From positions 107,758 to 171,757 of the forward strand of contig QPMI01000183.1 of the NCBI GenBank assembly GCA_004431415.1: a DNA stretch of 64,000 nucleotides, in the 5' to 3' direction. Positions 13,578 to 54,027 of the stretch are shown in pieces (position 1 is the first letter of the stretch; each line of letters opens with the position of its first letter). This DNA is from Cyanophora paradoxa CCMP329. Taxonomy: Eukaryota > Plantae > Glaucophyta. The translations under genes were made by a program, and so were the position numbers. The notes beneath the pieces were generated by a model. That model searched no databases and was not told the DNA's origin. It saw nothing but the letters and a program-made list of their open reading frames with translations.

Positions 13578-16500
13578 ATGGAGCCGGGAGAAAGTGCCGC
13601 GTCACCCCTAGCGACGCCGAGCGTTTCCAAACCGGCGACAGAGGCCAGCACAGCGAACCCGGCAGCCTCCCCTGCTCCTAGCGCCTCAGCGAGCACGCTG
13701 GTGTCTGCAGACACGTTGTGCACGGCGGATATGGCTGCGAAAGTCGCAGCTACCAAGTCCGCGTATCGCACACTCGACAGCGCAGCGGTCGCCAGCGCTC
13801 TTCGTATCGAGTTGGATGCACTCGGGCAACAGGTCGACGTTGAGGCGATCGAACGTGCAGTGCAAGAGTGCCGCGGCGGCATTGTCGAGGAAGCTGTGCA
13901 GAAGGCGCGCAGGCACCAAGCGCTAAAAGAGAAGCTGGAGTCTTGCCCACAGCAACAGCGTGCGTGCTGCAGCACCTTCCTTCTCGTTGTTATATCCCCC
14001 CTTACTTAGAGCGCGCTTTCACCCGCAGGCGCCGCATGCATCCGCTATCTTCAGTTGAAACTCTACAGTGAGAGCGCCACTGGCCGCGCCGAGCTTTCTG
14101 ATCTGGAAAAGCTTCTCATCCGCGTCGACAACACAATCGAAAAAGGGCAGCGTCGTGTCGCGAAGATCAAGAAGATAATGGGGAACAAATTTGACGGATT
14201 CGTTTCTGAAGAAGACTACATGGTACAGGCCTGCAGAAAGTATGTAGAATCGAGTTTCCCGACCATACCAGAAAACAAAAAGAAGCTTCTCGGTATGCGT
14301 ACACTGATTTTGTATGCCTGTCTTTCCTTTCTTTAACTTTAATTTCGTGCAGTCGCAGCCTATGACAGTTGCAAGTGGTTTGAGAAGCGCCACGGGGAAT
14401 TGATCAAGCGCATAGAAGCCTGCAAGCCAGCAGTCGAGGATGCCCTGAATCTCATCATTTCTGCCAACAAATTGGAGTACGACTTCTTGCAGGTCGATGA
14501 TTCTCTACTAAAATTGGATCGTCGGAGAGACCAGTTGGGACTCAAGCCCCGCTTGACGGTGGCGGGGCCCGCTGCTAATGCCAGCGTCAAGGAGAAATCC
14601 GGAAAGCCGAGAACACTCGTGCGCGGACCCATTCTCCGAGTCCCTGCGTGCCTTACGCGCAGCAGCCGCCCCAGAAGGATCCGAAGCTCGAGGCGAGAAA
14701 GGCGCGGGCGGCCAGCTTCACGGCTAACCCCGCCTTGTTCCGAAGGGCCCCTCCCCCCTGGGCCCGAGCCGCTGCACAGGAGGAGCCGAAGGTGGAGGGG
14801 CCGGCCGCCGCCGCCGCGGGCCCCTCGCTCCCTCCGCCGCCTCCCGAGACGAGGCCAGCCGCTCCGGCGGCCCCGGCGGCGGCGAAGGACGGGAAGGAGG
14901 AGGCGCGGCCGCGCGAGTTCGCAGTTCCGCCGCCTCGTTTCACTGGGGCCGGCGCCAGCCCGCCCGATGACGTGCCAAGCCCCTCTCAGCCGTCCCGCCA
15001 GACCCCTCCCACCCCCGCTTCCGCATTCCGTCCGCCCCTTCCTCCGCCTGGAGTGGTGGAGGAGACGCCGAGCAAGGGGCGGAAGGGTGGGCGGGCGCAG
15101 CTCTCGTCCACGGCGAGGCGCCGGTGGAAGGACAAGCTCGCGAGGGACGCGGAGCTCGAGCAGGTGCTCGCGCCCGCCTCGCCGCTCCTCCTCCCGCTTG
15201 ACCGCCGGGGCAGCTGGCGGCGCTCAGGGAATCGGAGTCGAAGGGCGGGAGCGCCGTTCGCGGGAATCTCTTTGGGGAGCCCTCAGACGAGGCGGCGGGC
15301 CCCTCCGGAGTAGAGCCCTCCCCCGCGCCCGGGCACGAGGCGCGCCAGCCCGGCTGCGACGACGATGACGATGAGTCGGTCGGCTCCGATGACGAATTCA
15401 TCCCGCGCGGCACCCTCCCCGCCAACCACCGGGCCCCTCCCCAGTTCCCCCCCGCGGCGCCCGCATCCGTTCCCCATTCCGCCCCCATCTCCACCCCTCA
15501 CGAACCCATCGTCCTCCCCCCCTGCGGCAAGCCGAACGTCGCGCCCCGATCTTCTCAGCCGGCGCCTCCCTCCGAGGCCCCGCATCCCGCCCCTTCCCAT
15601 CCCGCTCAGGCGAGCCCCGCCCGCGTCCAGCCCGCCCGCAAAGCGAAGGCGCTGTCTCCTATTGCCGTACCAGCACGCGGCGCTGGGCGCGGCCGCGGCC
15701 GCGGGCGCGGCGGAGCAGCGACGCGAGGCGGCGTCGCCAACGGAGCAGTCAGCTTCCCGGAGGCGCAGCCGAAGGGGAGAGCGCAAGCCCCGTCGGAAGA
15801 GGGCGCGCCGAGGGACGGCCAACCGAGTGCACGCGGGCGGGAGTCGAAGGCGAAGCGGGGCGGGGGTCCGTCCGGCGCCCGGCGGCGCACCGCGAAGCGC
15901 CCCGAGCCGGAATCGGAGCCGGAGCAGCCGGCCGCGGACGGAGCGGCCTCGGAAGCGGATAAGGAGGAGCCCGGGCCGCGCGTGACGCGGCTGCGCCTGC
16001 GGCGGCAGGTCGGTGGGGAGGGCGCCGGGACAGCAGAGCGCGCAGCGGCCCCGAGGTCCTCCTCCTCGGCCTCCGGAGAGTCGCATGCGGAGTCGGACGA
16101 GGAGCCGTCCTCCTCGTCTTCGCGGTCGAGCTCCGGCAGCGAGGCGAGCCCGAGCGAGCAGGAGGAGGACGCGTGGGAGGAGCAGGCGCCGACCAGGCGC
16201 GCCCCGCCCCGCCGCAGGGCCGTCCCGAAGGCCAAGGTTGCGGCGGGCGGCGAGACCGGGTCGGGGGCCGCGGCGCCGCGCAAGGGCCGCGCGCCACCGA
16301 AGAAAAAGCGGCCGGAGGCGGACGATGAAGACGAAGGGGCGCAAGGCGACGCGCCGCCGGCTCCGAAGCGCGCGCGAAAGCCCGCGGCGCCTCGGAAGCG
16401 GGCGGCGGCCGTGGCGGCCGAGCCGGCCGGAGAGGCGGAGGGGCCGAAGACCGTGGAGCCGCCAAATCGGCGCAGGAAGAAGGCAGAGGCCGCGGACGGG

Positions 16501-18708
16501 GACGCGAACCCCGCCAAGCGCTCCAAGAAGGCGGTCCGCTCTTTCGCTGAGCGCGCCTCGCCCTCCGCACCTCACCCGGCGTCGTGCAGGAGGGCGCGTG
16601 GGCGCCCAAGGTGGAGAAGCGGCCGCGGAGGGCTGCGGCGGGCGCGGCCGGCGAGAAGGATCGCTACACGGAGAACTTCCGCGGGTACAAATTGAAGAGC
16701 CGGGTGGGGCGGGGCCAGCTGGGCCAGCGGTGGCGTGCGGCAAAGCCGTCGAAGGGGGCCGCGCGGCCGGCGGCGTGGCACGGGGACGGTCAGGACGTCT
16801 CCGCGCTGCTGGGCGAGCACGCGGAGGACGTCTGCCGGGCCCTCGGCGAGGACGCCGGGCCCTCCTCCTCTTCCTCCGCACCGGCCGCCCCCGAGGCGCC
16901 GGCCGCCAGGCAGCAGGAGGCCGAGGCCGCCGTCTCATCCCTCTTCACGCAGGCGCGCCCTCTCTCCCGCGCCCCCGGAGCGCCTCCTTTCGCCGCTGAC
17001 GGCCGGCCAGCAGGAGGCGCGCGAGTACAGCCGGGAGGCCCTGGGGCGCGTCGCGTCGGCCGTTTTCGGCTTCAAGGAGCTCCGCGACGGTCCGCGGCCG
17101 ACCCGCCCGCTGCCCCGGGGTCCGGGCCTGAGCCCCCCGCAGGCCAGTACGAGATCGTCTCGCGAATCCTCGCCGGCCACTCGACGCTCGCCGCCCTGCC
17201 CACCGGTCCGCCTGCCGCGCCCTGGCCTCTCGCGGCGCCCGACGGGGCGGGGCGGGCAGGGGCGGGCAAGACGCTGTGCTACATGCTTCCGGCGGTGGTG
17301 CACAGCGTGCGCGAGGCGATGCGCGAGAAGCGCGAGGGGCAGGCCCGGCAGCAGCGCTCCGTCGGTCCGCGCCGCCCCATTTTAGACGGCGCGAGGCCGG
17401 GCCGGGGGGCCAACGGGGCGCGCAGTGCTGGTGGTGAGCCCCCTGGTGGCCCTCATGCACGACCAGCTGCGTGCTCTCCCCGTGAACCTCGGCGGCGCCC
17501 TCCTCGAGTACGGCACGACGGTGCCGCCCGCCTCCCCGCCCCCACGCCCTCGCCCTGTGCCTCATGCGGGCGGGGCGCGCAGCTCGACGAGGAAGCCGAG
17601 ATTTTCAAGCGCCTCAAGGCGCGCTCCGCCTTCGGCCGACCCCCAATGCCGCCCCGCGTGACGCGTCGGCGCGCCCGCAGGAGGGCAACGCGCGCGTGCT
17701 CTTCGCCTCGTGCGAGCGCGTCACGTCGGAGCGATTCCTGCGGGCGGCCGCGGAGCCCGCCTTCCCCCGCGTCTCCCTCGCATGCGTCGACGAGGCGCGG
17801 CGCTCCCCCCCGCGCCGCGCACCGCCTCCCTTCGCGCCGCCTGACGTCGTTCCGCGCCACAGGCGCACCTGATCTCGGACTGGGGCCACTCCTTCCGGTC
17901 CGTGCGCGTGGGCGTGGCATGCTCGCCCTTGCGTAACCGGCCGATCCCGTAGGCCCTGCTACCTCACCTTGGCCGCCGCCCTCCGCCGCCTCGGCGCCCC
18001 CACCACCCTCGCCCTCACTGGTCCGTGCCGCTCCGCCCCTTCCGCATCCGCCGCCCCGCGAAATGGCCTCCGGCAGCGACGGCGACGCGGCGCGTCGAGA
18101 GGGAGATCTGTGACACGCTCAGCATCCCCCGCGGGCCGGTCGCGGAGGGCGGCGGCGTGCGTTTCGAGCCGCCCCACGCTTGAGCTGCGTCGGCCAACCC
18201 CTCGCGCGCCTGCAGGTCGTGCGGCGGCCGCTGCACCGCCCGAACCTTCTCCTCACGGCGACGCACCTCGACGCGGAGACGAAGAGGCTCGCCCGGCGGC
18301 GCCCCGTGCTCGCGCCCGGTGCTGACTGGCCGCCCAGCTCGAGGACGGAGGCGCTGCTGGAGCTGCTGAAGAGCGAGCGAATGCGCAGCAAGAGCGTCAT
18401 CGTCTACACCGCCTACAAGGTCCCTCCCGCGCCCTCCGCGCCCCGCCGCCCCCGCGCGAGCGACGCGCGCGCAGTGGCAAGTGGATCTTGTGTGCCGCCA
18501 GCTGCAGGAACACGAAATCTCCGCGGCCCCCTACATGGGCGACATGGACTCGAAGTCACGCCGCGGGTGCGTGCAGCCGGCCGCGCCTTCGCCCGCGGCC
18601 GCCTCCGACGCGGCGCAGCGTGCTGGACTCGTTCCGCCTGGGGAAGATCCAAGTCGTCGTCGCCACCGTGGCCTTCGGGTGCCGCCCCCCCCCCCCCCCC
18701 CCCCCCCC

Positions 18709-18750
<42 letters not shown>

Positions 18751-20814
18751 TGCCTCCTGCGGCTGCGCCGCCCCGCGACCCCCGGGGCGGCGCAGGATGG
18801 GCATCGACAAGCCGGACCTGGGGGCCGTCGTCCACTGGACGCTGCCTCGCTCCCCCGAGACCTACCTCCAGGTACCTCCCGCCCCGCCCCGTCGGGGGCC
18901 CCTCAACGCATCGTGACGCGCGGTCGCAGGAGGTGGGCCGCGCCGGCCGCGACGGGCGCGATGCTGAGGGCCACGTCTTCATCCGCGACGAGGTGCGCTC
19001 CCTCCCGAGGAGGAGGCCCCGCTGCAGAGATCGATCGAGGGCGGGGGGCAGGACTACCGCCTGCTCCGCTCGCGCATCTCGAGCGACACGGTGGACGCCG
19101 ACCCGACCGTCGCCCGCCTCCTTCACCGCCTCTTCGCCCCCGGGCGAGCCCACGCGAGCCTCTTCCCCCGCGTCGCCGCCCTCGCCAAGAAGACCATCCC
19201 CACCGAGCTTAGCATGCAGGCCCGCTCCCCGCCCCTCCCGCCTGCCACACGCCCAGCTCCTCGCGCGAAGCCGAGACGGACGCGCAGCCGGATATGGTCG
19301 CCACGCTCCTCACGTACCTCGCGCAAGACAAGGAGATCTCGCCCCCGATCGCCCAGCTGCTCCCTGGTGCCGGCCCCGCACGCCCCGATGAGACGGCCCC
19401 GCGCGAGCCCCGGGGCAGCGGCGCAGGTGATGGGGAGCTTCTCGCTCGAGCGGGGCGTGAGCCTCCTGGCCCTCCACCAGCGCTTCGAGGTCGTGCGGGC
19501 CGTCGCCGAGGCGACAGCCCCGCAGGCCACCTTCACTTTTGCCCTCGCCGACGTGCGCGCCCCGCCCCCTCGCCTCCGCCCCGCCTGGCCGCCCCGGGCG
19601 GGGCCCGACGGGCGCGGCTGCCGGCAGGTGGCGAACGCAATCGGGCAGGACCTCGAGGGGGCTGCCGACGCCTTCCGCGCCCTGCAGCGCGAGAGGCAGC
19701 TCCGCTTCTTCCGCTCCGAGGTCCGCCCCCTCCGCCGCAGGGGAGGCGACGCAGGGGCCCACTCGCGCTGCAGGACGGCCTTGCCGTGCGCCTCCTGCGG
19801 GCCCCGCGGGAGGGCGAGCTGGCGGAGATCGCAGCCCGCCTCGCCGCCCGCATCGCCGCCTTCGAGCGCATATCCCTCCGCCGCCTCGACAGGTTGGCCG
19901 CTCGCGGCCCGCCCCGCCCCGCGCCGCCGCTCGCCAACGTCCTGCAGCGTGTACGCGATGCTGCGGTCCGCTGCCGTGCCCCTCCGCGTGGCGTGCCTGT
20001 CCCGCGACGACGGCGCGGTGCGGCCTGCCACATTGCCCACGCGGCGCGCAACCCAACCGACCCCCCAGGCCCAGCGGAAGGCCGCGCGTGCCCGCCGCGA
20101 GGCCAGCGACGACGAGGCTGTCGGGCGGGCCGGGCGGGCGGAGAAGAGTGCGGCCCGGGCGGCGCCCAGCGTCCGCGCGCGATGCTGACGGGCGCGGGCA
20201 GGCGGGCGGTTGCAGGCAGAGCTGGCGGAATACATGGCGGCGGAGCCCCTCGAGCCCCCGCCCGGCACCTCCACCGCCCCCCCCTACGATCCGCCCCTTC
20301 CTGTCCGCGGGTCCGCGTCTGCCCCCAATGCCGCAACCTATTCGAGGTCTCCTTTGCCTCACCGGGTCCCCCAGTGCCGATTCCTTTGACCGTGCTGACG
20401 TTCGGACTGTGCTGCGGAACGCCGCGGTTCGCCTTGCCGCCCGCCAGCGCCCGCACCGGCTCTCTTCAACGCGACTCGCGCGCAGAAAATGGGCGTCCGG
20501 CTTCTGCCCCGCCAGGTGGCCCGCGCTCTGCATGGCCTGCAGGGGTACATCATTTTTAGTTTTATTAAAAATTGATAAAGATGGGTCGCCCCGAACCAGC
20601 TCCTCCCTTTCCTGACGTCTTCGCAGTCCGGGAGACAATTGGAACAGGAACTCCCCGCCGAGTTGGTGTGGGGACCTTTTCAGAAAGAAGGTGCCCCCAG
20701 CGAGCGCAGCCTTGCCAGACAGCGCTCTGAGGGCGGGGTGTGCAGGAGCACGTCGACTTCAACGACCTCCTGCGGGATGCAATGCTGGCGATGCCCAAAC
20801 AGGGGGCACTCTAG
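13578..20814 (+). CDS. RECQL4: RecQ-family helicase, RECQL4-like, with a long N-terminal extension
   Basis: ENFRGYKLK upstream motif; FGFKELRDGQ, LPTGAGKTLCY, VVSPLVALMHDQL, CVDEAHLISDWGHSFRP, VATVAFGMGIDKPD, YLQEVGRAGRDG; C-terminal VARALHGL..HVDF. The frame can be spliced continuously from ATG 13578. Confidence 0.85.
18685..18750. repeat. Poly-C tract (66 nt, one T at 18709) inside a RecQ intron
   Basis: Directly visible; it lies between the VAFG and GMG exons. Confidence 0.9.
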
Positions 20815-21127
20815 ATCCAAGCCCGAAGCCTGCAGCCCAAAATAGGGGCCACTGGGCGACTCGGGTAGATGTAGAGTGGTATACTATGTATATATAGAAC
20901 ACCAAACACTTCGTTAATGAGCCCCAATGACAAATACGTATACAGTAGCCTACGCATTGCCATCCGGATGTGCCGATCATGATAGTTAACCGATAGCGAA
21001 CATCACTGTGAAACGAAATGTTTATCTACACAAGAAAACCAAATTCAGAGCCGCTGTACACTTTGCATTCAGCTCCACCATTGATGTTCCAAGTTCACAG
21101 CAGATTTCGTCGTCAATGTGTGAACCA

Positions 21128-23137
21128 TCAGATAACCTGGGCCGGGGGGAAAACACGCTTCAATCTCGAAAGAATTCGTACAGGGTTCGAAGTGGCAGGC
21201 AACAAACCTCTCCACGGCCGCAAGAAGACCATTCTGTACTTCCGGACCATTTCCCTGGGAGCCATTCTCGGAGAAATTGACACTCGTGCTTCCACCAGCT
21301 GAAAAATGCTGATCGCCATGATCCCTCTCATCAACAGGGAGGCGAAGTGGATAAAAATGAACTCTCCGCAAGAAACCCTTGATGACCCCAAGAACACAAA
21401 GCCGCCTGTTCGCAGCGCATCTTCAGCTGGATGAGCCATCCACAACCTGACGTATTGATCAAAGAGTCACCTGATATCGATTCCCCATGCATAGACGTCG
21501 TGTTGAACACATATGTCGTGCAAGGTGACACCCGGCTGGACTCCAATTAAAGGTATAAACACTCAGCTGGATCCGGAGAAAGAGAGAAAGAGTCACACAC
21601 GGACAGAGTGAGCACATACCTGCATAGCACATAGCACCGCCATTATTTTGTGGAACAGGGACTGGGTGGCCCCGGATGACACAGAGCGACCTGAAAACTC
21701 ATTGTTGAATTGACGTGACTGGATTGGAATGAGACCGGAGAGATGCGATTACAAACCTCTGAACTGAGAGGAGAAAGACTGGGCCGTTGATTTCGAGCAA
21801 AGCATACATACTTCACGCTGTTTAGATTCTCAGCATCTCAGAATGAAGCGAAGCGTGCCCTGCCAGTTAAGCACCTGAAGAGCGGGATCATGCCAGAGCT
21901 GATGTACTTCGGGTTGAACAGCATACACGTTCGAGAACTGGAGAACTCGCATTAGCATGTCGATTGAAAGTGGCTGCTGAAAATAACAACCTGGAATATG
22001 TCGACAACCCTGACGCATCCGTAGTACCTAGATGCACCGTCAATGAACAGTCACACTAAATGATGAGGACGAACACAAGCTGCTGGATACACTTGCAAGC
22101 CACTCCCACCTGCCACGATTTATTGCCAAAAAGCTTGAGAATGTTGCAAGATACAGACCTCAACATCAGCTTCTCTTGCAATCCGTTTGACGTAGTTGAT
22201 TCCATCAACGAAAGGCACGATCTGTATGATTTAATTGGTGGAGTTGATATTTGAACCCCCTGACAAAACACGGGCCAAAACCAAAGTACCTGCTGCAGAG
22301 TCAGGTCCCAGTCCTTTGTAACGAGTCTTCTCAAGTCGAAGACAGGAACAGGAACCTGGCAAACGAAGTTCAAGTTGCTGGCAAACAATATATTTGCATG
22401 AAAAGCAGAACCTGATGCTCCTTCACTTCGGAGGGAGGGGGAAGTGGGGAAAAGAGCTTCAGACTGATCGTGTTCGCAGCGTCTGAAGCACAATAATTAA
22501 AGCAATGCAGTTGTTTGCTAGAGAAAGGTCGAACCTACTGGAACACTGCATTCGCCTTGCTCGCAGAGCTGCTCGTGCAATCGAGGAAGGATGCTGCGAA
22601 GGGTCTGTTTGCTTTCTGGGCGAGATAGAAATTCGCTCTCGGTCTGTCGAAAATATCAGTTAAGTATCACGCGACGATTTCACAACCTAGCAAGCGCCAG
22701 TGTACCTCGAGGGCACACAAAACCAGGGCGAGCTTGCGCACAAGCGGCTCGTAGTGCTCCACCTCCGCATCCTCTGCAAACACGAACCCGGCGTTGAACA
22801 GCAGAGCGTTCCGTGCATACTTTGCCTTCTCAAGACACACAGGCAAGCACAGGATCTTGATACCGAACGCGCAGCTGTACATGTGGACGTAGTGAGAAGG
22901 AAGCAACCTACTGTGCAACGCGAAGCGCACATCGTAATAAGTTTGCCAGCAATCTGCGGCTTCGTGATAACATACTCCGACACCGCGTCGAAGACGTCTG
23001 GAGACACGAAGCTGGCGCGGACGGTTAGAACTCACGCGTGCCGCGATCCGCGCAGGTACGCACCCCTCAGGACTTTGAAATGCTATTCGCGGCCCGACGA
23101 CGTTGTCGAATTCGGCGAAAAAGATGGCTCGCAGCAT
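21128..23137 (-). CDS. NPRL2: GATOR1 subunit NPRL2 (3' end uncertain)
   Basis: IFFAEFDNVVGPRIAFQSPE, FDAVSEYVITKPQ, KYARNALLFN, YEPLVRKLA, WDLTLQQ, PFVDGINYVKRIA, IFQFSNVY-like motif. Confidence 0.92.
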
Positions 23138-23438
23138 AGCTAGTTTGCTTGTGTTATCAGTGCGCATAGCTGAACAAATTTCATGAGCCGCATCCTCGGA
23201 CGCGTAATGCGTGACTCATGCACACGATCAGCCCAGCGCTACCGTGTGCCGGCTACGCCGGCGTTGGCTGGGTCGGTGGCAGGGTACCGATCCTACTCGG
23301 CCCGCCCAGCGTTGCTAGCCGCGCTGTGCTATGGAGCAGAGAAGCGGCTCGTATAGTGCAGCACAGGTAGTGCATGGTGCCCTTCCAGCCCCGGCCCCCG
23401 ACGACGTCCACCCAATACTACATTACATCTACAGTCGG

Positions 23439-24025
23439 CTAGAACTTCCGCTTAATCTCGAACTGCACGACCGGGGTGACCTTCTGGAGGTCGTTGAAGT
23501 CCTTCACGTTCGTGAGGTCCGCATCGCCTGGCGAGAAGAGAATCAGGGCCGACGTGGATGCGAGAGAGCAGCCGTGCGAAGCTTCTAAAGAGTCTGAAAG
23601 TAGAAAGAAGCTTTCAAATGGCAACGGGGCCTAGACTCTGCATACGCAGCTACCGGAAAACCCAGGGCGGGTGTTACCCGCATCTATGGCGGGAGTAGCT
23701 AGGGCGAGGCTCAGAGTCCTGCTCGGTACGCACCCTTGAAGACGATCTTGGTCGCAGAGTCGATCTTGAACTGCGCGGAGGGTCGAAAGAAGGTCAGTGG
23801 CCATCGCAATTCGTCGAGACGAGCTGCATGAGGCGGCAACCGCCAAGGTGGGAGAACGAAACCGACCTCCTTGGTGATGGTCACACCGTACTTGGCATCC
23901 TTGTGGCCATCGGCGGTCAGGAGCTGCGCGGGAGACCCAGTTCAGGGACAGGATGACGCATGGCTTCGCGGCTTCTTCGCTCGAACCTGGCGGTAGCGGA
24001 TATCGACGTCGAAGCCGAGCGACAT
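23439..24025 (-). CDS. 73-aa four-beta-strand protein resembling one repeat of plastid outer envelope pore OEP21
   Basis: Exons 24025-23987, 23923-23867, 23770-23734 and 23527-23439, all GT-AG, join in frame to MSLGFDVDIRYRQLLTADGHKDAKYGVTITKEFKIDSATKIVFKGDADLTNVKDFNDLQKVTPVVQFEIKRKF*; strong C/G-ending codon bias. The gene model is well supported; the family call is tentative. Confidence 0.75.
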
Positions 24026-24179
24026 GTTTCTGTGATTTCCCGAAGTACGGAACTCGACAATCAAGAAACCGCAGCTGCTCGACAACTGTACCCGCTTGTT
24101 ATCCCACCCCCCCTCCCCTCAACCCACCCCCAAGACCTAGTAGCTGGCGACCGTTTAGCTAGTACGGCGCTGCAGCGCG

Positions 24180-27100
24180 ATGTCTCCCGCGCCAGTGGCT
24201 GCTTCGACGCTCAGCGCCGCGAAAGCTGGCGCCTCGGTTTTGGCGGACAGCCTGCGCGAGGTCAACGCGACTTCGGCGGATCTGCTGGACCTCCTGCATG
24301 CGGCGCAGTCGTCCAATGAGCGCGAGTACGTGGCACTCGACGTGCCGATCTTCAGCCGGCGGCCCGCTGTGGTTTTCCCGCCCGCTCTTCTCGACCAGTA
24401 CTCGCGTGCGCCGGGAGTTCCGCTCGCGGTTTGCCATGGGAGCGCGCTCGCGCTCACGCTCGTTCCGCAGAGCTCCAGTACAAGTGCTTCATGGGCCTGC
24501 TCCCGGCGATCAACCGCGCTTATCTAACGATCGACAACAAGCTCTTTCTCTGGAATTACGCCAATGGGTGCGCCGCGCGGCCCGCCGCCTGCTGGCCAAG
24601 TGATTGATCGTGCAGCAGGAAGGACATATGCGAGTTTTCCGGCGTCGATGAGATCATTGTAAGTGTTGGGCTTGTAAAACCGAGGCCGGATGTATTCGTG
24701 GATGAAATTAAGTACCTTCTCGTCATTGCCACACCCCTCGAAATCGTTCTTCTTGGCGTGTGCTTCCAAGGGGGCTCGCCTTCCGGCACCCTTGTCCTTT
24801 ATCCGAGTAAGTACAGTCTCTTGCAATCGTTCATTAGAAGAGTCTGATGTTGGGGCCCTTGCAGCTCAGCTGTCCATGCCCTCTGACAAGATCGACATGT
24901 TGCGCATTGTTGGCACGGACAACGGACGGATTCTGATGGGTGGCAAGGATGGCAATGTTTACGAGGTTTGCTGATTTTATTCTAAAATAGACCTCGACGT
25001 ATTAGAGTCCTGATGTAGAGCAGATCATCTATCAATCACAGGAGGGTTGGTTCTCAAAGCGATGCAAAAAGGTCAACGTTTCCAAAGGCAGGCTGAGCAT
25101 GCTCGTTCCCCATTTCTTCCGGTGAGTGAAAAGCGATGAAGATATTTTTCAGACACTGACTTTCCGCAGCTCTTCCGTCGATCCGATTGTGGACATTGTG
25201 GTGGATGAGCAACGCCACATACTTTACACGCTTTCTTTACCAATGACAATCCAGGTAAACACTTCGAGTGCTGTTCCACACACGGTGACTCACCTCCGTG
25301 CATTGCAGGTCTTTTACCTCGGCGAGCGAGGCGATTCTATATCCATGGTCGCTCAGTGGAACAGCCTTGCTCGCGATGGAAAAACATGCACCCCACAGTA
25401 CTCCGAGTGGATCGTACAAGCGAAGAGCATTGTTCACCTGGCCCCTGTCTCTCCCTCCGAGTCGTCAAAGATCACACTTGTTGGCATCACGAACAATGGA
25501 TTGCGCTTGTTCTTCACAGTGTTCTCAGATGTGAATCCGTACACTCTGCAGGTGCATTCTCGCCAATGTCTTTGACATGCACATGGGTGTAAGTTTCACG
25601 GACAGAATGGGGGTGGACGGTCAACTCCATCATCACTCCAGCTCATTGCAGTCCGACTTCCTCCAGACCCTCCATCGGCTGGGGGCTCTGCGTTGCTTCA
25701 GCAAGCCCGTGCTCCCACTTCCTACCATGTGCACCTTGCCCATTACCATAATGGAACCATGCTCCTTGCCGACTCCCGCACCGAGGTTCCAGAATAATTT
25801 TGTTTGAGTTTATCTGCTGCGCGCTAATTCATGGATTCTAGGATTTGGACTCCCTTGTCGGAACTGTGCCTGACACAGCCTTCTTCAACAACGCACAAGC
25901 ATACAGGTGGAGGCATCTTTATGCTCATTCTCATTTTCATACGCCTGATGGACTTGGTAGTTCGTATGCATACGGATCAACAAGGAAGCCCCTGCGTGAA
26001 TGTGTGGCGGGGCTCGAGGTACTTCTTCGCTATTGCGTTGTATACAGGCGCAAGTTGAAGCTTATTGAACTTCGCAGATCGAAGGTAAAATTTGGGCGTT
26101 TGCAGAGACACCATCTCCTGGAGGCTCATCTCTTTGCGGGGAACTGCTTCCGAACCAACCACAATCTGCCCGAGAATTCTTGTGCCTTACAACGACCGGC
26201 GTTCATCGTGTGACAAAATCGCGAGCTGTCGATCAGTTGCGCGATCTTTTGAAAGCTAACGAAAGTGAAGCTGTCAAGGTGGGTATTTTCGTTCCTTTTA
26301 CCAGGCAACATCTGATTTCTGGATATTCGAACAGAAATTCTTTGAACGTTTTGGTGAGAGCCTGTCATGCGCTATGTGCCTTCAATTGGCATGCGAAGCT
26401 CAATCGGGTCAGTGTATTTGAATATCCGTTCAGCCAGTCCTCATCTTGGGCCAGACCTCGTATCTGTTGCATCTCAAGTTTTCTTTGAGTATGGTGGGGC
26501 ACCTAGCTTTGAGACGAGAGCAGAAACAGTTCCGGGTTTGTTCTGATTGTTGGTCTCGAAATTGTTTTTTACGTGCTAACAGGTCTTTAGCTGCAGGCAC
26601 TGGTGACATGGGGCGAGCTATCACGACCCCGCAGCTTCGCCACTCAGGCTGTTACCGTGGCTTGAATATTAGCTTCGCATGTGTAGTTCTTCCCTTCTGG
26701 AGCAATAGTATCTTCTCGGCAATGCCTGGTGGCACATACAAATGCAGGTAATAGGGCTTCAGAGTGTCACATACATGTTTTGCTTTGACACAAGCCCCAA
26801 TCAGATTCACGTCGGAGCAGCTACAGCGACTGCACACATCGGTTGGCCAGCTCTTGGGCTTCCTAACAAGGAGTGAGCTCTTGTGTTTTTGAAAGTGTCA
26901 GCAATGTGTTGACACTCAATATTTCCGCAGATCCTCAGTTCCTCAAGGCCAGTGCGTCAACAGGGGATACGAATGAGACGAAGACATTATGGAAGCGGAT
27001 GATCAGTCTCCAGAAGCGCCCTCAGAATGAACCAGCAATGAAGGTCTGTCAAATTGCGTGCATCGATCATTTCAATCCTTATGCCGCAGTCAGGCCGAGC

Positions 27101-29138
27101 AAAAATGCCTTGGAGATGTTCAAGTGACTCTACAGCGAACTGCTCACGCAGCCTTCCTGCTAGCCTTTCTCAACGACCACATGCTCAGCAGGCTGCTAGA
27201 GAGGTGCAGGTCATTTACGAGTGCGAATAGTTTGAGACATGATGTGCCCGCAGGCTCCCACCTGAGATGCAGCAGCGGTGCTTGTCAACAACTTTCTCCC
27301 AGCTTGTTAGCAGTGAAGATGGAGCCGCAGTGGCCCGCACATTGGTGTCTTGCTTGCTGGATCAGTACAGTCAAGATCGGTCTACGGTGTGAAAGTGCAG
27401 TACTTGCGCTTTGAAAGCTGCATGGCTAATTCTTTTTCGCACAAACAGATCAGACATCTGAGCGAGGCACTGAGCGAGAACTGTGGAAGCTTCTTTAGCT
27501 GGGCAGAAGCAACACTGTCAACCGGGAAGGATCTGTTGTCGAAAGCACGAACCGTTACTTCCCCATCAGAACGTGCTGCATTGTACACAGAAGCGATACA
27601 GGTGAGGATCTTCAAGGTTTATGTGGTCACTTTTGAAGCTCATATGTATGTGCAGGTTTATCTGCAAATCGCCCAACAACCTGATGGAAATATCCTTGAT
27701 GCTGTCAGCGAGCTTGGGAAAGTTGGCTTTTGTCGTGGAGCAATCGACATTCTGCTTGCACGTCTCACTGTCTTGCATTCAAGTATGTGATCACTGTCCC
27801 TCATCCTCCAGACTTTCTTGATATCTCGATCAGGTGCTGCCACCAACGAGATCAAGCCAGATGACTTGAAGGCTGCAAAATCATCTTGCATTCAGGCTGG
27901 ACTTGCTCTTGCTGCACAGCTCAACGCAACACACCCCGCAGAATCTGTGGTCACGAGCGAGGTGTATTTCGCTGATTGGGTCCTAATTCGGTCACTGTAC
28001 ACCTCCTCAACCGCATACCCAGGTTGGACGGGCGATAATCTTGAGTAACATCCGCGATCTCCACTACGCATTCTATGATTGGCTGTATGACACGCGGAAA
28101 GAAGAGCTCCAATCTGTTCACTCAGCCTTCATCGAGGCATATCTGCTCGATCGAGACGTTCGCTTACTTGCCGAGCATTTCAAGCGCAGCGAGCGGTTCT
28201 CAGAGGCTGCCAATCTGCTCGCCAATCTTGCAGACAAAGCAGACCCTGGTCTTCCTCTTCGCTCCCGGATAGAGCTTTTGTCTCAAGCCATTGTGTCTGC
28301 ACGTGCATCATCTGTGGCTCCAGAGGTCCTCTCGGATTTGGAAGAGAAGCTGCAGGTGCTGGCCGCCTTCCCCCTCTATCCGGTGCTTCCTGCTCACCGC
28401 AGCATCACAACACTCAACAGGTAGCCCAGGCGCAACTGGAAGTGCTGCAGGAGCTGGAATCCGTGGGAGGCGATGAGGGGCGGCCAGCAGTGACTCAGCT
28501 CAACAGTAGGCTTCTGACTGTTACAGAACTCTTCAATGGATACGCTCAGAAATACGGCCTGTGGCGCTCGGCCCTTGTGCTGATCGAGACTGCGGAACAT
28601 GATGATCCTCCCGTTTGCCAGCAGTGCTGGAGGTCAGTGTTTTCTTCTTCCACAGTCTCACTCAACTCATTTGATTCTGCCCACAGCCGTGTGTTTGAAA
28701 GCCAGGGTCTCTCTGCAGCAACAAAGTCATTGAGTGGCCTGTCAGGTCTGGGTTTGAATGTCTTTAGTCTTGCTTGCAGGCATTAATTGAATGGTGCACA
28801 TTCTCAGCACGGACAGTGCCGGCAGAGGATGTGATTCTCTCTGCAATGAAGAGTGTGTTTCTCTCTGTTCTTGTGCTTTCATCTCTAGCCAACGAGTGCT
28901 TGCAGAGGCAGTGCAGACACCAGGAGCTGGTCCGACAGGCATAAAGGAGTTCGTCAGTGCAATATTGCGTATCCATCCAGTTCCTGTTGTTGTCGACGTG
29001 CTCAAGCGGGTGGCTTCGGAGGTGACAAGCAGCCATGCAGGGGGGCGTGTTCTGGAGGAGGCCCTCAGTGCCTTGGATTCCAGCAGCGCAAGCGACCTGC
29101 GAGCCCAGCTCCGAGTGACACGTTTCTCAAACCTTTAG
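24180..29138 (+). CDS. NUP155: Nucleoporin NUP155/Nup170
   Basis: CFMGLLPAINRAYLTIDNKLFLWNY, SVGLVKPRPDVFVDEIKYLLVIATPLEIVLLG, GTDNGRILMGGKDGNVYE, LHYAFYDWL, RIELLSQAI, LEEKLQVAQAQ, LLTVTELFNGYA. Confidence 0.95.
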
Positions 29139-29269
29139 CATTTGGACGCAAACTTTACAATTGTCCTGTGCCACGTTGCATTTTGATGCGACTTATCTGG
29201 CACGATGTCTGGACTAGCTGTTCTGAGTAGCAATGTTTGCAGCCGACATCTGGGCTCAGCTGCGTAGGC

Positions 29270-29358
29270 AAACCGAGGGTCGAAACCGAGGGCTCCCACT
29301 GGCCACGGGCTCAAATCGAAATCGAATCGAAACCGAGGGTCGAAATCGAGATTGAGGG
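29270..29358. repeat. Short degenerate repeats (AAACCGAGGGTCG / AAATCG)
   Basis: Three AAACCGAGGG copies interleaved with AAATCG units. Confidence 0.7.
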
Positions 29359-29638
29359 GTACTAGACGGGTGCAAGGCCCAAGGGGAAGGAACGCCACCC
29401 GAAAGGAACGATATCCTGTACTACTACTACTACGGTAGCTAACGAGCCCTGGAGAACGCACTAGCAAGCTGGCCGCGGCCAGCGGCCCGGCGGCCGGTGG
29501 CAACCTGGCATCGGTACTGTGGCACTCGTGACTAGGCGATCGCGAGGCCGGCACGCAGGCGCCATGGCCATACCGTGTACCAGGCCCTCACGAACCAGCA
29601 ACAGCCGGCGCCTGCCTCTGTAAGTATAAGCCTAGTAG

Positions 29639-30049
29639 TGTTGCGAAGCGTAGTTCCCCTTCCCTTTCGCTGTAGCGAATGTAGCATGTACGCTAGTGAT
29701 ACCCTGCCGGGCCGTCCCTTGTGTAGGGGTATGTCATTCAATCATACACGGATATTACGCGTGTGCGCACGTGCGTCCCGGCACGGCACTGCGCCGTGTG
29801 CGGAAGTGGCTTAGAAACCATCGTATAGACTTTAGCAGCTTCTTTTTCAGCGACTTTAGCAGCTTCTTTTCAGCGTCTTTTTAGCAGCTTCTTTTCAGGG
29901 CTGCTGCACTGCGGCAGGAACGCACGTGCGCACACGCGTAATATCCGTGTATGATTGAATGACATACCCCTACACAAGGGACGGGGTATCACTAGCGTAC
30001 ACGCTACATTCGCTACGGCGAAAGGGAAGGGGAACTACGCTTCGCAACA
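29639..30049. mobile_element. Non-autonomous TIR element (MITE), Ginger-like: TGT...ACA ends, ~140-bp TIRs, 4-bp TSD GTAG
   Basis: 29639-~29776 is the reverse complement of ~29920-30049 (2 substitutions, one 8-bp indel); GTAG at 29635-29638 and 30050-30053; 3x GACTTTAGCAGCTTCTTTT(T)CAG in the core (29828-29898). Confidence 0.88.
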
Positions 30050-30257
30050 GTAGAACCGTTGAACCCCGTACTAGAACCCCCACGAATTGAGTAACCACGA
30101 GCCACCGAGCCCTTAAAGAGGCACGAGTCGTCTAGCTAGTGTTTGTGGGGAACTGGCCGGCTTGCTGGTGGGCTGGAAAGCTATTGCCGCAGTGTGTACA
30201 CTTCGGAAGTTGCGATTTAGTTCGTGTCTAATTCAGGTTTGACACATACTCTGTCTC

Positions 30258-33200
30258 TCATGCCTTCTTTGAGAAAGTCTCGTTGATGCGAGCGGCATCA
30301 ATGGGGGTCGGGGTGGGTAGGAAGCGAACTCCAAGCGCTGGGAGCAACTCCGTGACTTCGAGAAGACTGGACTTCACGCTCCCAATGTCTGCGAGCTTCG
30401 AAATTAACCAGAGCAACTGAGTGAGGGAGAGGAGAAACACACCCTCGTTGGCCAGAATGTCAGCAAGCGATTGCACAATCGACGAGAAAGCCTTGGAGGA
30501 CTGGAAGCGCTGCAGCAGTGGTGCAGCCGCGCGGAGAAGGGCGACCGCAGCATTGCCATCAGCGACAGACAGTATCCACTTTGTGTTGAGCTTAGTGGCG
30601 AACATCTCCAACATGTCCTCTGACAACTTGTCTGCTGGCGTGTTCTGCACGAGGACTGCAGCGAGCCTGCAGAAGAAGTCTGTGCCTGATCTCGACACAT
30701 ACAGAACGCAGAAGCTCACAAGCAAAGGGCTGCGAACGTCTCTGGAGCGTCATCTTCGCCCTGAACACGGTTGATGATGCTCAGCACATCAGTGAGCAAA
30801 TCCTCTGGGACCGAGCATCCACTCTGTGCCAGATGCTCCAACACCATAATGTGGCCAACCTGCAAATCTTCACTTTCCTCCTCACTCGCCTGCTTGCTTT
30901 GTGAGAGTTCAAAGAGAAAGCAAACAGAGCAAGCAGTACCTCATGTACAAGTGAAGACAAGCCCGCTACAGCAATGCCTGCCTCTGCAGGGAATTTCTTC
31001 GCAAGTTCAACTGCGGACAGCTTTTAGAAAGAATAAGGCAAGCAAAAAGCAACCAAAAACGGGCTTGCCAGCAACGTCGAGGCCAGTGGCAACAACAGCG
31101 AAAGGAGAGAAAGCCCCAGTGATTGACAGTTTGTGAAGAGGGGATTGCACAGCGGAAGCCGTTTCTGAGTCGTCTTCCAGGCTGTCTACAGGGAGCGACT
31201 CCGCAATCTGGAGCAACGTCAACTTGATTCCGAAAGCATCACAAAAAGAGAGACACACAGCCTTGAGGACAGGTCCAGTGCTAGACCCGACTGCAAGCTT
31301 TTTCAAAGCAAGAAAAGCATTGCAGCGAATCTCAGAGTCTTGGATTGACGTGGAGCCGCACGACTTCATGCACTTGATGACAGCCTGACACAAGTTCGAG
31401 CTCTGCTTGCGAATGAGTGGGTTCATGCTGGCTGAATGCGGGATGGCACACCTCGCCGTCAGTGGCTGGAGCTTGAACCGAACAAAGTGTTGCGAGCTTG
31501 ACTTCAAATGAGGCAGACTTCCAAGATGCAATGTCGAAGTTCGCTAAAGGCGTTGGCACATCACCCATCCGCGGCACATTAAGAAGTTCAAGGCACAAGT
31601 GCAGAGCGTGTGCTGTTTCTCCGTTGCTCTTCCTGCAATACTGGAAGGTTAGTGCAGACAATGTTCATGACTGAAGTGCCTGGCGCACTTCAGTAGTGTT
31701 GCGTATAAGCTCGACAGGCACTTAGACGCCTTGTCCACCCCAACGGAGGCAAGGGAAGAGGCTACACGAGTGCAGATAAGGAGCAAATAGAGCTTCTCAG
31801 CAGTCATCTCTTTGAGCTCGACGTCGTGGTTATCCTCATCTTCCTCATCATCGTCATCACCATCCTCATCAGCCTCATCCCTAAACAAAAAATGTGAGGC
31901 AAATTAGAAAAACCAGCAGCAGGTCACTGACGGATCAAACTCGAAGTCTTCAGCCTTGCCAGAGGCGAAAGCAACGATGTAGGCAGCAAGCTTCTTCAGC
32001 AGTGCCTCGCACTTGTTGAGGGCACCAACCTTTGCGACCCAATCAGCGAAAGCAAGCTGCTCTTGACTGGAGGCGGCCAACCTGCTTCACTACAGGAATC
32101 ATGAGGCTGACAGCTGTCATGCAGTTGCTTTGAACAACAGCACTATCACGGCTGAGCTCAATTAGTGCGCCTTGGATGGCCGTAGAAAGAAGTTTTGCGG
32201 CATGCTGCTTGTACGATGGCACCACTGCAAGGCCAGGTTGGCTTGCGATGTAGAGGAGTGCTCTCGCGATACCCTGCACCCAGCTCTAAAAAAGCCCGAT
32301 AAAGGCAAACACAAGGCTTGTTTGACCTCGCGACTCTCTTCTTCTGGGTTATCCTCCTCAGAGAAGCTGAAGCGCGCCTTAAGGCCCTTGGCAAAGGCAG
32401 CCAGAAGTGCATCATTTTTAAAAACTGCCGTTTCGAAGCGGCCATCTGCAGGGGGCACTTGAGCAACATTGCAGAGCACAAATAGTGAACTGAACGCGTA
32501 CTGAAGAGAGAAACCATCACAGGGACTGCCGTGAAACGAACGTTCTCGTAAGAGCTGAATGCCAGGCAGATGAGCGGAGTGACCAGAACTGTGAGAGCGT
32601 CATCGCCAAGCTCTCTGTCCCAGTGCCGGATGGCTGAAGCAACACACTGCACAGTGAACAGTCAGATTTCACGAATCAACGGAGAGCACAAGCATGCCTT
32701 GAGACCCTCAATCACAATGTTCTCCGTATCAGCGGCAAGGACTTCCACAAGCGTCTTGGGAAGCTCGCTTTTAATGGTTTTGACGAGCTGCTCCTGGCCA
32801 CGGAGGTTTGATGCTGCACATGACAAGAACTTGGAAAGGGCAGCCGATGCTGCAGCACGAGGGTAATCGGGAAGCTTCCCAGCACTGCAGCAAGGATCAG
32901 AGAGAAGCCACATGCGGATAGAAGATTGCAGACGTGTTTAGAGTTCCCTTGCACAAAGCACGGAAGATATTTTCTGCCATGGGGCCTTCCTTCAATTTTG
33001 GTGGGTACACAGTCTGGCCAATTACCTCCTCGAATGCTGCGAACGCAATGGTTAGGCCTCGCAGAATACAAGACAGCTGCAACACCGAATACTGATTACC
33101 CTTGAAGACACTCTCGCGGACATCGGTGTTCACAGCCTCACATTCCTTGAGAAGAAAATCGATGAGAGCAGGTGTAAGGTGGCTGAGGGCCTCTGCCTCA

Positions 33201-35094
33201 CTCCCCAAGGCTGTCGTCACTGCCTTCCAGTTCTTGACTGCACTGTCGCGAATCGGGAGCGATGAATGGTACTTGTTCTTGAAAATAAGGCATTGCAACG
33301 GCCCCAGGTGATCCTGCAAACAAGATCAGCAGAAATAGAGAAGAAGAAGCAAATTCTAACCTTTACTGCAGGCGCTGCGAATGAGTTGCCCACTAGCCTG
33401 AACACGCTCTGGCCACCGGCATCCAGGAGGGTGGCTTCTGGAGAGCTGAGAAGGTGAACAAGCTGGGGCAGAAGCTCCTTCGCGAAACGATCGCTTGCAG
33501 AACCACTCCCGCTTGACTGCGCGAATCCATCCAGGTTAGCGTGCAAGTATTCACGTGCGCACAACAGAACTCGTACGGTAAATTTCAGGGAGAGAGAAGA
33601 CATCGCGTTCGCGAGGCTGTCGACCGACATAGATTCAAGCTGACATTGAGACAGGAAAAGGTCCGTCAATGCAACAGCTGCTGCCGCATTTGCCGAACCA
33701 ATCGTGCTCGCGCTTTGGCTGTATCGTACAAGCTGTCAGTTCAGTCACATACACAGGCTGATAGTTCGTGCCAACCTTGCATCAGCTGACACGAGCGGTT
33801 GTTTAACCTGAGCAGCAAGTGCTGTCGCAAGGGCACTCTGGAAATCAGCCGACAGGCTCCCAATCTGTCATGACAGTGAGAAAACATTGGAGACTCCACC
33901 GGAACAGGAAATGGCTACCAAAGTGGGCTGTCTGCAAATGAGGGTAAGGGCCGTGCCAAGCCCATGCCGCTGCTCCCAGCGCGAGGCGGTATTGATCCGA
34001 TCCAGCAGAGCTTGAATCTCCTGCTGAATGTTGCTCGATCCAGAGACATTCAGAACCTTCATGAGGACGGCGTAGTGCAGCCGAGCAGCAGCCTAAAAAT
34101 GACGATCAGCACTTAAACATGCAAGCAAAGCATGAAGCGTGAGAATACCTTCCTGGCATCGATGTTCTCGTCATCCATGCGCTCAAGGGCTGTCCGCCTG
34201 ATTGCTGCCTCGAGCTCCGTACCAATCCACAGCTTGTCAATGCTTCCGAGCCGGACTAGCCGCTCAAGCGCTGCAGATAAAAAGATCTGTCATATAATGC
34301 ATCACATATCATTCTGCGCCGGCTAGACCTTTGAGAGACTGCAGGCGAACGTAGTTCGAGTAACCCGCAATGCTTGAGAACGAGGTATGCCGGATAAGCA
34401 CGTCACAGAGGAAACTGCGAAGAGCGCACTCAGGCATTATCGAACAAACCAAAGCTGCGAGGGGACCTCAGCGATTCAGGCGACAGAGAGGAAGCGCGGC
34501 ATGCGATGTAGCCAACAGCAATCATGAAGCCTTCCAGTGTTTGCCACGACTCGTTCTGCTTCGTCGCGCGCTCAATACCGGCCTTGCACTCCTGCACCAG
34601 CCTTTCACCGAGCTTGGACGAAAGAACTCCCAGGCACTGCGCTCTCATTTGCCCGAGCGCCGCGCGCATGACGCGCGCGCGTGACGCACCTGCGCCGTGG
34701 CATCGCGAACTTCGCGCTTGTCGTCGGCCAGGTGCTCCAACAGCACGTGCAGATTGTCGTGAAGGAGGGGCTCCAGCGGGCGCTTCGTGTTTTGAAACGC
34801 AGCTGCGATGCCGTAGATCGAAGACTGAACGAGGTTCCATTTCGGGTAGCCGAACAAGTGCCGCAGCGCGGCGATGGCGCGCTCAAGGACGGCGTCAATC
34901 GGCTCGCCGGACTTGATCTCGTCGAGCACGCGGTCGAGGGCATTGATCAAAGGAACATAGTCACTGTCGCTGTACGCATCGAAAGCGTCAGCCGGATGGA
35001 GCGCGCGTTCTATGAATCAAAACGATTACTTCTTCTTTGGCGTGGCGGCAGTCGTCTTCTCGAGCTCGTCAATCAAGCGCGGAAGGTTGGCCAT
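30258..35094 (-). CDS. Large HEAT/ARM-repeat protein (some ECM29/GCN1-like motifs; orthology unresolved)
   Basis: HEAT signatures LLEHLADDKREVRDATAQCLGVL, SWQTLEG, RWEQRHGLGTAL, KYHSSLPIRDSAVKNW, NTDVRES, DSEIRCNAFLAL; many short introns. Confidence 0.75.
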
Positions 35095-35334
35095 GCCCAC
35101 GACCGTCGAGCGTACAGCCCACGAGCGAGCAGCTAACGGGCGATCCGACGCGCTCGTCTCGAGGGGGTACCGTACGCTAGAGTTAGCTAGAGCCTCGTAG
35201 AGCAAGTGCGACGAGCCTCGTAGTTATGGCTGACGTGTCGTGCAACAAGAGTGCGCCTAATTAAAGCCTTGCAAACCTTCCCGCCACGCGCGCGCGTCGC
35301 AGCAAGCGTCAGCCTCGAACCCGCCCTCCAGACA

Positions 35335-52056: not shown

Positions 52057-54027
52057 TCACACCGCTGAGCAGCCGCAGGCCGCGACGATGCCGTTCGAGC
52101 ACGTGCACACGGGCTGCGCAGGCACCTCAGAGGGGCGGGGAGAGGCTGCGGCAGGAATGGAGGCGGGGCGGGCCTTGAGAGAGGCTGCGCAGCAGCGGTC
52201 GCAGCGGTCGCCGCCGCACGCCGCCGTGCAGCCTGCGCGCCCCCGCCGCCGCCCTCGGCGCCCGGCAGAGAGCCGGCGGGGCGGGGGGCGCACAGGAGAA
52301 CTCCTCGGCGGCGGGGAGGGGCGGCCCGGCGAGGCGGGCGCGGCAGTCGAGGACGCGCTTGCTGATCTCCAGCACCTCGCACGCCCCCGCGGGGCGTTGT
52401 GCCGCCGCTCCTCTGCTCCGCTTTCAGCGCGCGACACGGAGGGGCGGAAGGGCGGCGGGGCACCGCGGTGCTCCCCGCGGTCGTGGCGGCCGCGCTCGTG
52501 GTGGCAGCGGCGGTGGCGCCCGTGATGGCGCCGGTGCCCTGCGCGTGCCCTCGCCTCAGGTGCGCGCCCCGCCGCGCCCGGGGCCCCGTCGTGGGCCTGT
52601 CCTACCCTCGCTGTGGCGGCGGTGCACCCCGTGCCCGCCGCGCTCCTCCCGGCCGCGAGTGACGTCAGCGTCCTCTGCCGGCGGCGCTCAGCCGCTGAGC
52701 GGCCACGGAAAGGGCGGGGGCGAGGGCGAGAAGGGGGGGAAGCACCGTCGGCGTCGTCGGCGGCGTTGCAGTCCATCTGGCCGGAGATCACCTCGAGCAG
52801 GCTGCAGATCTCGTCCACCCGGTCCTGCCCGCCCCGGCGCGGACCGGTCAGGAGCCCTCCAGCGGCCTGCCGCGCGGGGGACCGGGGCGGGCACCGTGCG
52901 GACGGTCTCGCGGACGACGGGAAGGGTGAGCTCGCGCGCGCTGCAGTCTGCCACCGTGTCGACCTGCGGGAAAGACGGGACTCGAACCCGCGGCTAATGG
53001 CGTGACAGACCACTACTCTAACCATGTCAAGCGTGTTGCAGAGCTGCTCGTGCGCGAGCCGCTCCCCGCGCGTGCCGCACTCGAGGAACCAGAGGATCTT
53101 GACGGCCTCGCACAGCTTCTTGTGCTGGTCGGGGTCCATGTCGGGCGCAATCGGCTCGGCCTCGGCGGGAATCGCCGGCTCCGGAACCGCGGCCATGGCC
53201 AGCTGCAGCGCCTGACGGCGCGCGTTGCACGAGAGAACGTCCTCGGCCATCGTAAGCGCCTTGCACGCGTGAGGGTGGCCTGCGCATCGTGCGGGCAGCG
53301 GAGCTCGAGCGGCATGGCCGGGAGGGAGATCTGATACCTTCATGGCGAGTCCCGCACTGCATGGTGTCGCGCAGCGTGTCGAAGAGCGCGCACACAGCGT
53401 CGAGGCGGTCCTGCGAGGCGAGTGAGCACCGAAGCTCGACGCGCGCCGCCGCGGCGCCCGCAGATGCTGTTATCAATGTGCACATCCTGCAGCTCAGCCT
53501 CGGACTGCGTCGGGGCGATGTCGCGCTGGAGGCCGCAGTTGATGACGTCGTCAATCATGTCGAGCGTTTCGCAAGTCCTGTTGAGCGATCAGACGCCGCC
53601 CGCGACCGCGCTCGCAGAGAAGAAACTTCGCACCGAGGATGGCCGTGACGACGTTCACGAGTCCCGCACATGAGGTCCCAAATGACGCGCCTGTGGCGCG
53701 CGTCCATCGTGCACGTGTTATCAATGTGCGTCCATTAATTGCAAGTGCACGTGTTGCGAGTCGGGGTGCGTACATCGACATGCAGACTTCGTGCAGCTTG
53801 TCTCCCTGCGCGTACGTCATGTAATCAGAGTCTCCGCATGCAATTTGAAACGACGCGGCGGAAGGCGAAATTGCGGATTCTCGAACAGCCAGACGGACCG
53901 CGAGCGCCGGAGCCGCCGGAGCCTCTCCCTGGCGACACATAACAAATGTCAGGCATCGGAGATAGATGGCACCCGCGCGCACTCGCGCGCGCTCAATGCC
54001 GCGCGCGTTCTCCGCCGCGACGCACAT
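52057..54027 (-). CDS. Hypothetical protein with an internal duplication; start uncertain
   Basis: Coding-like exons KLHEVCMS, IDDVINCGLQRD, DRLDAVCALFDTLRDTMQC, KKLCEAVKILWFLEC, VDTVADC, DRVDEICSLLEVISGQMDC, separated by short introns. Confidence 0.55.

Follow-up and report, generated by a model that had tools for sequence, protein, structure and literature searches.

Where do the solute channels of the plastid outer envelope come from? The question is touched by a small gene in Cyanophora paradoxa, found in a 64,000-nucleotide stretch of DNA (the window). A sequence-only reading of the window had proposed that the gene encodes a free-standing four-strand unit of a β-barrel like OEP21, a channel protein of the plastid outer envelope, and that copies of it might assemble into a pore. 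Such a product needs a host with a primary plastid. The host has one: C. paradoxa is a glaucophyte, and its primary plastid is walled by peptidoglycan. The objection that the organism might lack a primary plastid therefore does not apply. The contig itself is algal and not human.

The gene is real. Splice reconstruction, with the exon translations checked, yields four exons on the minus strand with 222 coding nucleotides, specifying 73 residues and a TAG stop codon; the three introns are all GT-AG, with junction phases 0, 0, and 1 (Table 1). Coordinates and translations agree with the four-exon structure read earlier. The strong codon bias claimed for the gene is likewise evident: the third position is C in 40 codons, G in 27, T in 7, and A in none, and GC content at the three codon positions is 0.53, 0.27, and 0.91, respectively. 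Three neighbouring exons have GC3 values of 0.53–0.77. The contrast between GC3 and GC2 in exon 4 is matched by a fraction of 6e-5 of windows of 87 nt taken from the 17 kb around it. So strong a bias would fit an abundant product.

Close neighbours lie on both sides: a gene for NPR2 (PF06218), about 300 nt downstream, and a divergent gene for a Nup155/Nup170-type nucleoporin (PF08801, PF03177), with which the small gene shares a spacer of 155 nt. This arrangement leaves no room for a presequence or transit peptide, nor for further repeats or exons. GC content shifts sharply along the window, from about 48–60% at 21000–38000, a region that holds the gene, to 75–83% in much of the flanks (15000–20000 and 40000–64000).

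Table 1. The small gene, its disputed segment, and other features of the window (positions count from the first nucleotide of the window).
Feature	Positions	Strand	Remarks
Exon 1	23987..24025	-	13 codons; start codon and strand 1; phase-0 donor; present in the EukProt 95-residue record
Intron 1	23924..23986	-	63 nt, GT-AG; contains an in-frame stop and, at -22, a branch-like CTGAA
Exon 2	23867..23923	-	19 codons; loop and most of strand 2; residues 14-32 of the 95-residue record
Intron 2	23771..23866	-	96 nt, GT-AG; CTGAC at -27; free of stops in the frame of the exons
Exon 3	23734..23770	-	12 codons plus 1 nt; completes strand 2, then a turn and the opening half of strand 3; donor in phase 1; residues 33-44 of the 95-residue record
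Intron 3 (73-residue model)	23528..23733	-	206 nt; CTGAT at -19
Disputed 66 nt	23528..23593	-	coding (22 residues) in the 95-residue model, intronic in the 73-residue model
Predicted hairpin	23579..23613	-	perfect 8-bp arms (23579-23586 and 23606-23613), 19-nt loop
Exon 4	23439..23527	-	29 codons including TAG; rest of strand 3, a loop, then strand 4 with the C-terminal Phe; residues 67-95 of the 95-residue record
TGTAA pentamer	23423..23427	-	directly 3' of the stop codon; 37 such pentamers in 64 kb; we take it as a possible polyadenylation signal of green-algal type
NPR2 gene	22670-23131	-	
Nucleoporin gene	24180-29135	+	
Inverted repeat	29636-30052		two-segment arms of roughly 140 nt with 96-97% complementarity; encloses a 24-25-nt tandem repeat (29828-29898); lies directly 3' of the nucleoporin gene; resembles a MITE or fold-back element
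C run	18685-18750		66 nt, near-pure C, inside a gene that is presumably of RecQ type (its ORF fragments read like such a helicase)
Marginal Rfam tRNA match	52975-53032	-	30 bits against a threshold of 29, over part of the model; may be an intron-split tRNA or a chance match

The gene had been called hidden, but it has already been predicted. A search with the exon 4 open reading frame matched one protein, tig00000789_g4136.t1 of Cyanophora paradoxa (EukProt EP00741): a singleton cluster of 95 residues, comprising the same four exons plus 22 residues. The added length comes from a different intron 3 acceptor, in frame and 66 nt upstream, whose AG ends at 23594. Codon use and the branch-point motif favour the shorter form. 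GC3 is 14 of 22 in the disputed codons, versus 67 of 74 in the 73-residue gene (Fisher p = 0.005). The branch-point motif is CTGAT for the downstream acceptor and TTGAA for the upstream one; the other introns have CTGAA or CTGAC. Over residues 49–61 of the 95-residue record, in the disputed part, the β-moment is about zero. The upstream acceptor sits in the loop of the predicted hairpin, which is only suggestive support for the 73-residue form (whole-intron folding, z = -1.8). On the other hand, the upstream acceptor has 14 of 15 pyrimidines, and its shorter intron is nearer the mean of 86 nt. Moreover, tig00000789_g4136.t1 comes from an RNA-seq-guided BRAKER1/AUGUSTUS run, so the length of 73 residues is favoured yet unproven; the authors of these gene models state that they need curation (PMC6704402). 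Judged by codon use and intron signals, the public model probably uses the wrong intron 3 acceptor, and thereby gains 22 residues that lack the gene's codon bias.

What does the peptide look like? Four alternating strands and the absence of a transmembrane helix had been noted, and both are borne out. The two faces of the strands are LFVIY and GDDRR (strand 1); AYVIKFI and KGTTEK (strand 2); TIF+GAL and KVK+DD (strand 3); and PVFIRF and VQEKK (strand 4). Hydropathy over 19 residues reaches at most 0.98. The 95-residue record has an alternation score of 33/36; one of the four best windows lies in the disputed insert, so the figure does not describe the four named strands alone. This score is matched by 0.35% of shuffles; by none of 451 soluble mixed-fold windows; by 1.9% of soluble all-β windows; by 3.8% of E. 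coli barrel windows; and by 25% of OEP21 windows. The hydrophobic face has aromatic residues at the ends of its strands, and charges are numerous (13 K/R, 11 D/E). The amphipathic pattern argues for strands that face lipid, though it is no proof of them. A C-terminal Phe, read earlier as an Omp85/BAM-type signal, is indeed present. As evidence it is weak: OEP21 proteins end in Leu or Met, and no universal β-signal has been found in chloroplast barrels (10.64898/2026.07.15.738633).

Searches for relatives used single exons as queries, or the 95-residue record and its parts. Among 5.8 billion proteins there was no homologue, and only tig00000789_g4136.t1 itself was returned. OEP21 was absent from the phmmer matches in 1.84 billion cluster representatives; the three other matches, to Sel1, PKD, and IPT/TIG repeat proteins, had scores summed over many weak stretches, and were rejected. 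Pfam and PHROGs gave no match; NCBIfam gave none of significance, the best (E = 0.067) being the adhesin Lsa14, over the disputed insert; and the PDB gave none for the gene, with the OEP21 structure absent at E ≤ 10. Metagenome, prokaryotic, and viral contigs held no locus related to the 95-residue record, and the prokaryotic and viral contigs no OEP21-related locus. There is no paralogue in the window, and no Rfam family in the gene's introns. Neither the peptide nor the gene identifier occurs in the papers and proteomic supplements searched. Orthologues shorter than 100 residues are often missing from transcriptome-derived proteomes, where the usual ORF-caller cut-off is 100 residues. The database blank is therefore weak evidence that the gene is an orphan.

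Is OEP21 itself built from repeats of such a unit? A 30-base degenerate motif fetched 40 OEP21 loci, which were verified by comparing full open reading frames with pea OEP21 (PDB 7BGH; E = 3e-44 and 4e-21). The OEP21 sequences fetched numbered 124; a profile search added at least 120 homologues, mostly from land plants and low in diversity. In hhalign comparisons, unit 1 (residues 1–56) aligns with unit 2 (residues 57–123) at E = 0.0018 and a probability of 15% (reversed control, 0.31). Unit 3 matches neither of the others better than reversed controls do, and the three-fold repeat supposed earlier is not upheld. By these alignments the OEP21 repeat appears weak, and two-fold at best. The last third would be a different element, so the comparison does not imply trimer symmetry.

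The fit of the peptide to OEP21, strand for strand, had also been claimed. Its register is as claimed, with units 1 and 2, but significance is lacking; against unit 3 there is no match. MAFFT, unaided, sets Y25, K31, and the E of the last strand on conserved OEP21 columns, in the strand-2 and strand-4 register. The commonest residue of OEP21 unit 1 or unit 2 occupies 16 of the 42 strand positions. Matched OEP21 residues include R6 (100%), Y76 (96%), K82 (94%), K97 (99%), and G34/G98 (91/94%); E116 (100%), R51 (92%), and F53 (96%) are matched as well. The K-G pair is formed only by the 73-residue junction. Identity to either unit is 8–9 of 42 strand positions, versus 7 of 42 between the two units themselves.

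Profile comparison with OEP21, the check proposed with the sequence-only reading, gave no significant match. The OEP21 profile scored 2–4 bits in hmmsearch, placing residues 17–43 on OEP21 residues 67–93, and HMMER searches overall gave 2–6 bits. Against full OEP21 the hhalign probability was below 1%; exon 4 alone gave nothing significant; and the 95-residue record is absent among the 120 matches listed from the OEP21 profile search. A merged profile of units 1 and 2, built without the query, was aligned end to end with residues 1–44 by hhalign (pairwise E = 6e-4, probability 28%). The score, 19.5, is matched by 3 of 229 bacterial barrel windows and by 3 of 150 pattern-preserving shuffles. 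With the same profile, the HMMER score of the whole 95-residue record is matched by 11 of 262 barrel windows and by 123 of 1000 pattern shuffles.

A five-block strand model of the merged units gives the peptide 26.8 bits, exceeding all 431 barrel windows, all 300 plain shuffles, and 296 of 300 pattern shuffles, with block edges that were chosen after the query was seen. The blocks fall at 5, 23, 39, 67, and 86, and so skip exactly the disputed 22 residues. With jittered edges, the score is matched by 0–12 of 219 barrel windows and by 3–218 of 400 pattern shuffles, settings whose last block runs beyond the peptide C-terminus being penalised; the second half of strand 3 is placed at residue 67 in 9 of 12 settings. 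Scored on unit 1, the peptide (12.1) resembles a typical unit 2 (median 11.5); scored on unit 2, it (23.8) lies above every unit 1 (maximum 20.8). Overall, its likeness to the OEP21 unit beats 95–100% of bacterial barrel windows, and P against pattern shuffles is 0.01–0.5, depending on settings.

Thus, the register can be reproduced, what the residues add beyond pattern is borderline, and kinship with OEP21 is suggestive, not shown. OEP21 was, moreover, picked by the sequence-only reading from among many families. As far as its sequence tells, the gene product is not a member of the OEP21 family, because it departs from the family in length, strand number, profile score, and C-terminal motif. 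Introns of moss and grass OEP21 genes lie near codons 31, 56, 108, and 140, and those of this gene near unit positions 9/69, 21/83, and 34/98; no position is common to both. The second land-plant OEP21 intron, near codon 56, coincides with the boundary of units 1 and 2.

Single-sequence AlphaFold gave a pLDDT of 40. With a borrowed OEP21 unit 2 alignment, it modelled an antiparallel meander (pLDDT 72) with strands at residues 3–15, 21–34, 39–50, 53–64, and 86–94, the disputed 22 residues also becoming a strand. This model is circular, and is thus neither counted as support nor allowed to decide the splice form. Foldseek searches with it gave nothing below E 0.09, and only generic sheets; 7BGH is absent among the best 50 matches, and soluble sheets, for instance capping protein and levivirus coats, rank highest, all without significance.

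Our preferred reading, held tentatively, is that the gene product may be a subunit of an oligomeric plastid outer-membrane β-barrel, related to the OEP21 repeat. The chain, of about 8 kDa, would form a four-stranded antiparallel β-meander, hydrophobic on one face and charged on the other. Since four strands are too few for a closed barrel, further copies (or a partner) would join it along the edge strands to make a barrel of several chains. The most likely site would be the muroplast outer membrane, entered without a cleaved transit peptide. There the product would make a putative small passive solute pore, its hydrophobic face toward lipid and its charged, near-balanced face as lining. Because the strands bear 8 basic and 6 acidic residues on their polar faces, such a lumen would be less anion-selective than that of OEP21. 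Three copies, as one candidate number, would give 12 strands, as in OEP21. The peptide is probably a distant relative of the unit of about 60 residues that OEP21 carries in two copies over its N-terminal two thirds. A more specific history looks rather doubtful: OEP21 would have arisen when a four-strand unit was duplicated and fused, and the peptide would be a stand-alone survivor of that unit, homo-oligomeric in the glaucophyte plastid envelope.

How else might the pattern arise? The peptide could be a soluble β-sheet protein, whose meanders pack their hydrophobic faces together (in a sandwich, ring, or fibre) and resemble OEP21 in alternation only. Pattern-preserving shuffles often match the OEP21 score, some soluble all-β windows (the 1.9% above) alternate as well, and both the high charge of the peptide and its soluble, though non-significant, top Foldseek matches point the same way. 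However, the alternation equals that of membrane barrels in strength and exceeds 98–100% of soluble windows; the aromatic residues at strand ends lie on the hydrophobic face; and Pfam, NCBIfam, and PHROGs offer no soluble family. A soluble sheet seems somewhat unlikely. Unlikely, too, is a membrane strand subunit that is unrelated to OEP21 or that completes the open (hybrid) barrel of another protein, be it Omp85-type, CppS/F, or a mitochondrial barrel protein, with no homo-oligomer. The amphipathic strands would suit either role; unrelated barrels occasionally do as well against the OEP21 unit (24.3 bits for NanC on unit 2; windows of LamB and FadL); and plastids have known or predicted barrels of hybrid and open type (TOC75-TOC90). 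Matches to near-invariant residues of both OEP21 units argue against this reading, as does the very strong codon bias, which would fit an abundant protein.

The last alternative concerns the product itself, which might be the five-strand, 95-residue model or a mix of isoforms; or else the gene might be the truncated remnant of an OEP21-like gene that was formerly full-length. In either case the single unit would be derived or an artefact. The longer form has in its favour the RNA-seq-guided public model (PMC6704402), the pyrimidine-rich upstream acceptor and its intron of more usual length, and the ability of AlphaFold to model the extra 22 residues as a strand; these residues, however, lack both the gene's codon bias and its amphipathicity. 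A remnant or artefact would fit a gene with no orthologue on record, but a GC3 of 0.91 and the want of A-ending codons speak against decay, and missing orthologues may reflect the 100-residue cut-off of ORF callers. We consider this alternative very unlikely.

A self-assembling, one-unit relative of OEP21 in a glaucophyte would date the unit before the Archaeplastida split, and provide a directly testable case of passage from oligomer to fused repeat. The more specific history of a stand-alone survivor, if right, would carry the OEP21 lineage to the ancestor of all primary plastids and give a single-chain organellar porin a multi-chain origin. A pore-forming chain of 8 kDa would, to our knowledge, be one of the smallest pore subunits of any eukaryotic organelle. 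If the kinship fails, what remains is an abundant-looking orphan β protein with a probably mis-spliced public model.

A reading as a relative of the OEP21 unit is undescribed in the literature searched. In a survey of sequences and structures from 2025, OEP21 was followed back no further than green algae, and no β-barrel OEP had a match in glaucophytes (10.1101/2025.06.18.660430). The COB database covers Viridiplantae only and drops sequences shorter than 125 residues, so nothing of this gene's size is described there (10.64898/2026.07.15.738633). A one-unit, self-assembling glaucophyte relative would escape both.

How does the gene compare with known systems? OEP21 has 12 strands (PMC10279527; PDB 7BGH). 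Both proteins lack a presequence and a transmembrane helix, both have alternating strands, and strand lengths, turns, and several near-invariant residues of the peptide line up with the unit in OEP21 residues 1–123. They differ in size, with 73–95 residues and four (or five) strands in the gene product and about 168 residues (family range about 165–180) and 12 strands, all in one chain, in OEP21; in the C-terminal third, with its motif QD...PY.Q.RENNW...W.V.YDL, invariant in OEP21 alignments and absent from the gene; in the putative lumen, which would be nearly charge-balanced here and is strongly positive in OEP21; and in host, a glaucophyte outside the known green-lineage range of OEP21. As described in PMC6704402, which cites Kojima et al. 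2016, CppS/F is the diffusion channel of the C. paradoxa muroplast outer membrane, of probable planctomycete origin. CppS/CppF share the organism with our gene, and the outer plastid membrane is the proposed site of its product, but by that description they form a separate, characterised family. In TOC75-TOC90/159 hybrid barrels several chains likewise supply strands, but these chains are large (10.64898/2026.07.15.738633).

No match in Pfam, the PDB, NCBIfam, or Foldseek links the gene to the families of autotransporter anchors or TolC. In TolC and the trimeric autotransporter anchors YadA and Hia, each chain contributes four transmembrane strands, and a 12-stranded barrel is closed as an oligomer. 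The gene, which is eukaryotic and nuclear, encodes no signal peptide, coiled-coil, or periplasmic helices, but it shares with these proteins four amphipathic strands per chain (here a sequence pattern only) and a C-terminal aromatic residue.
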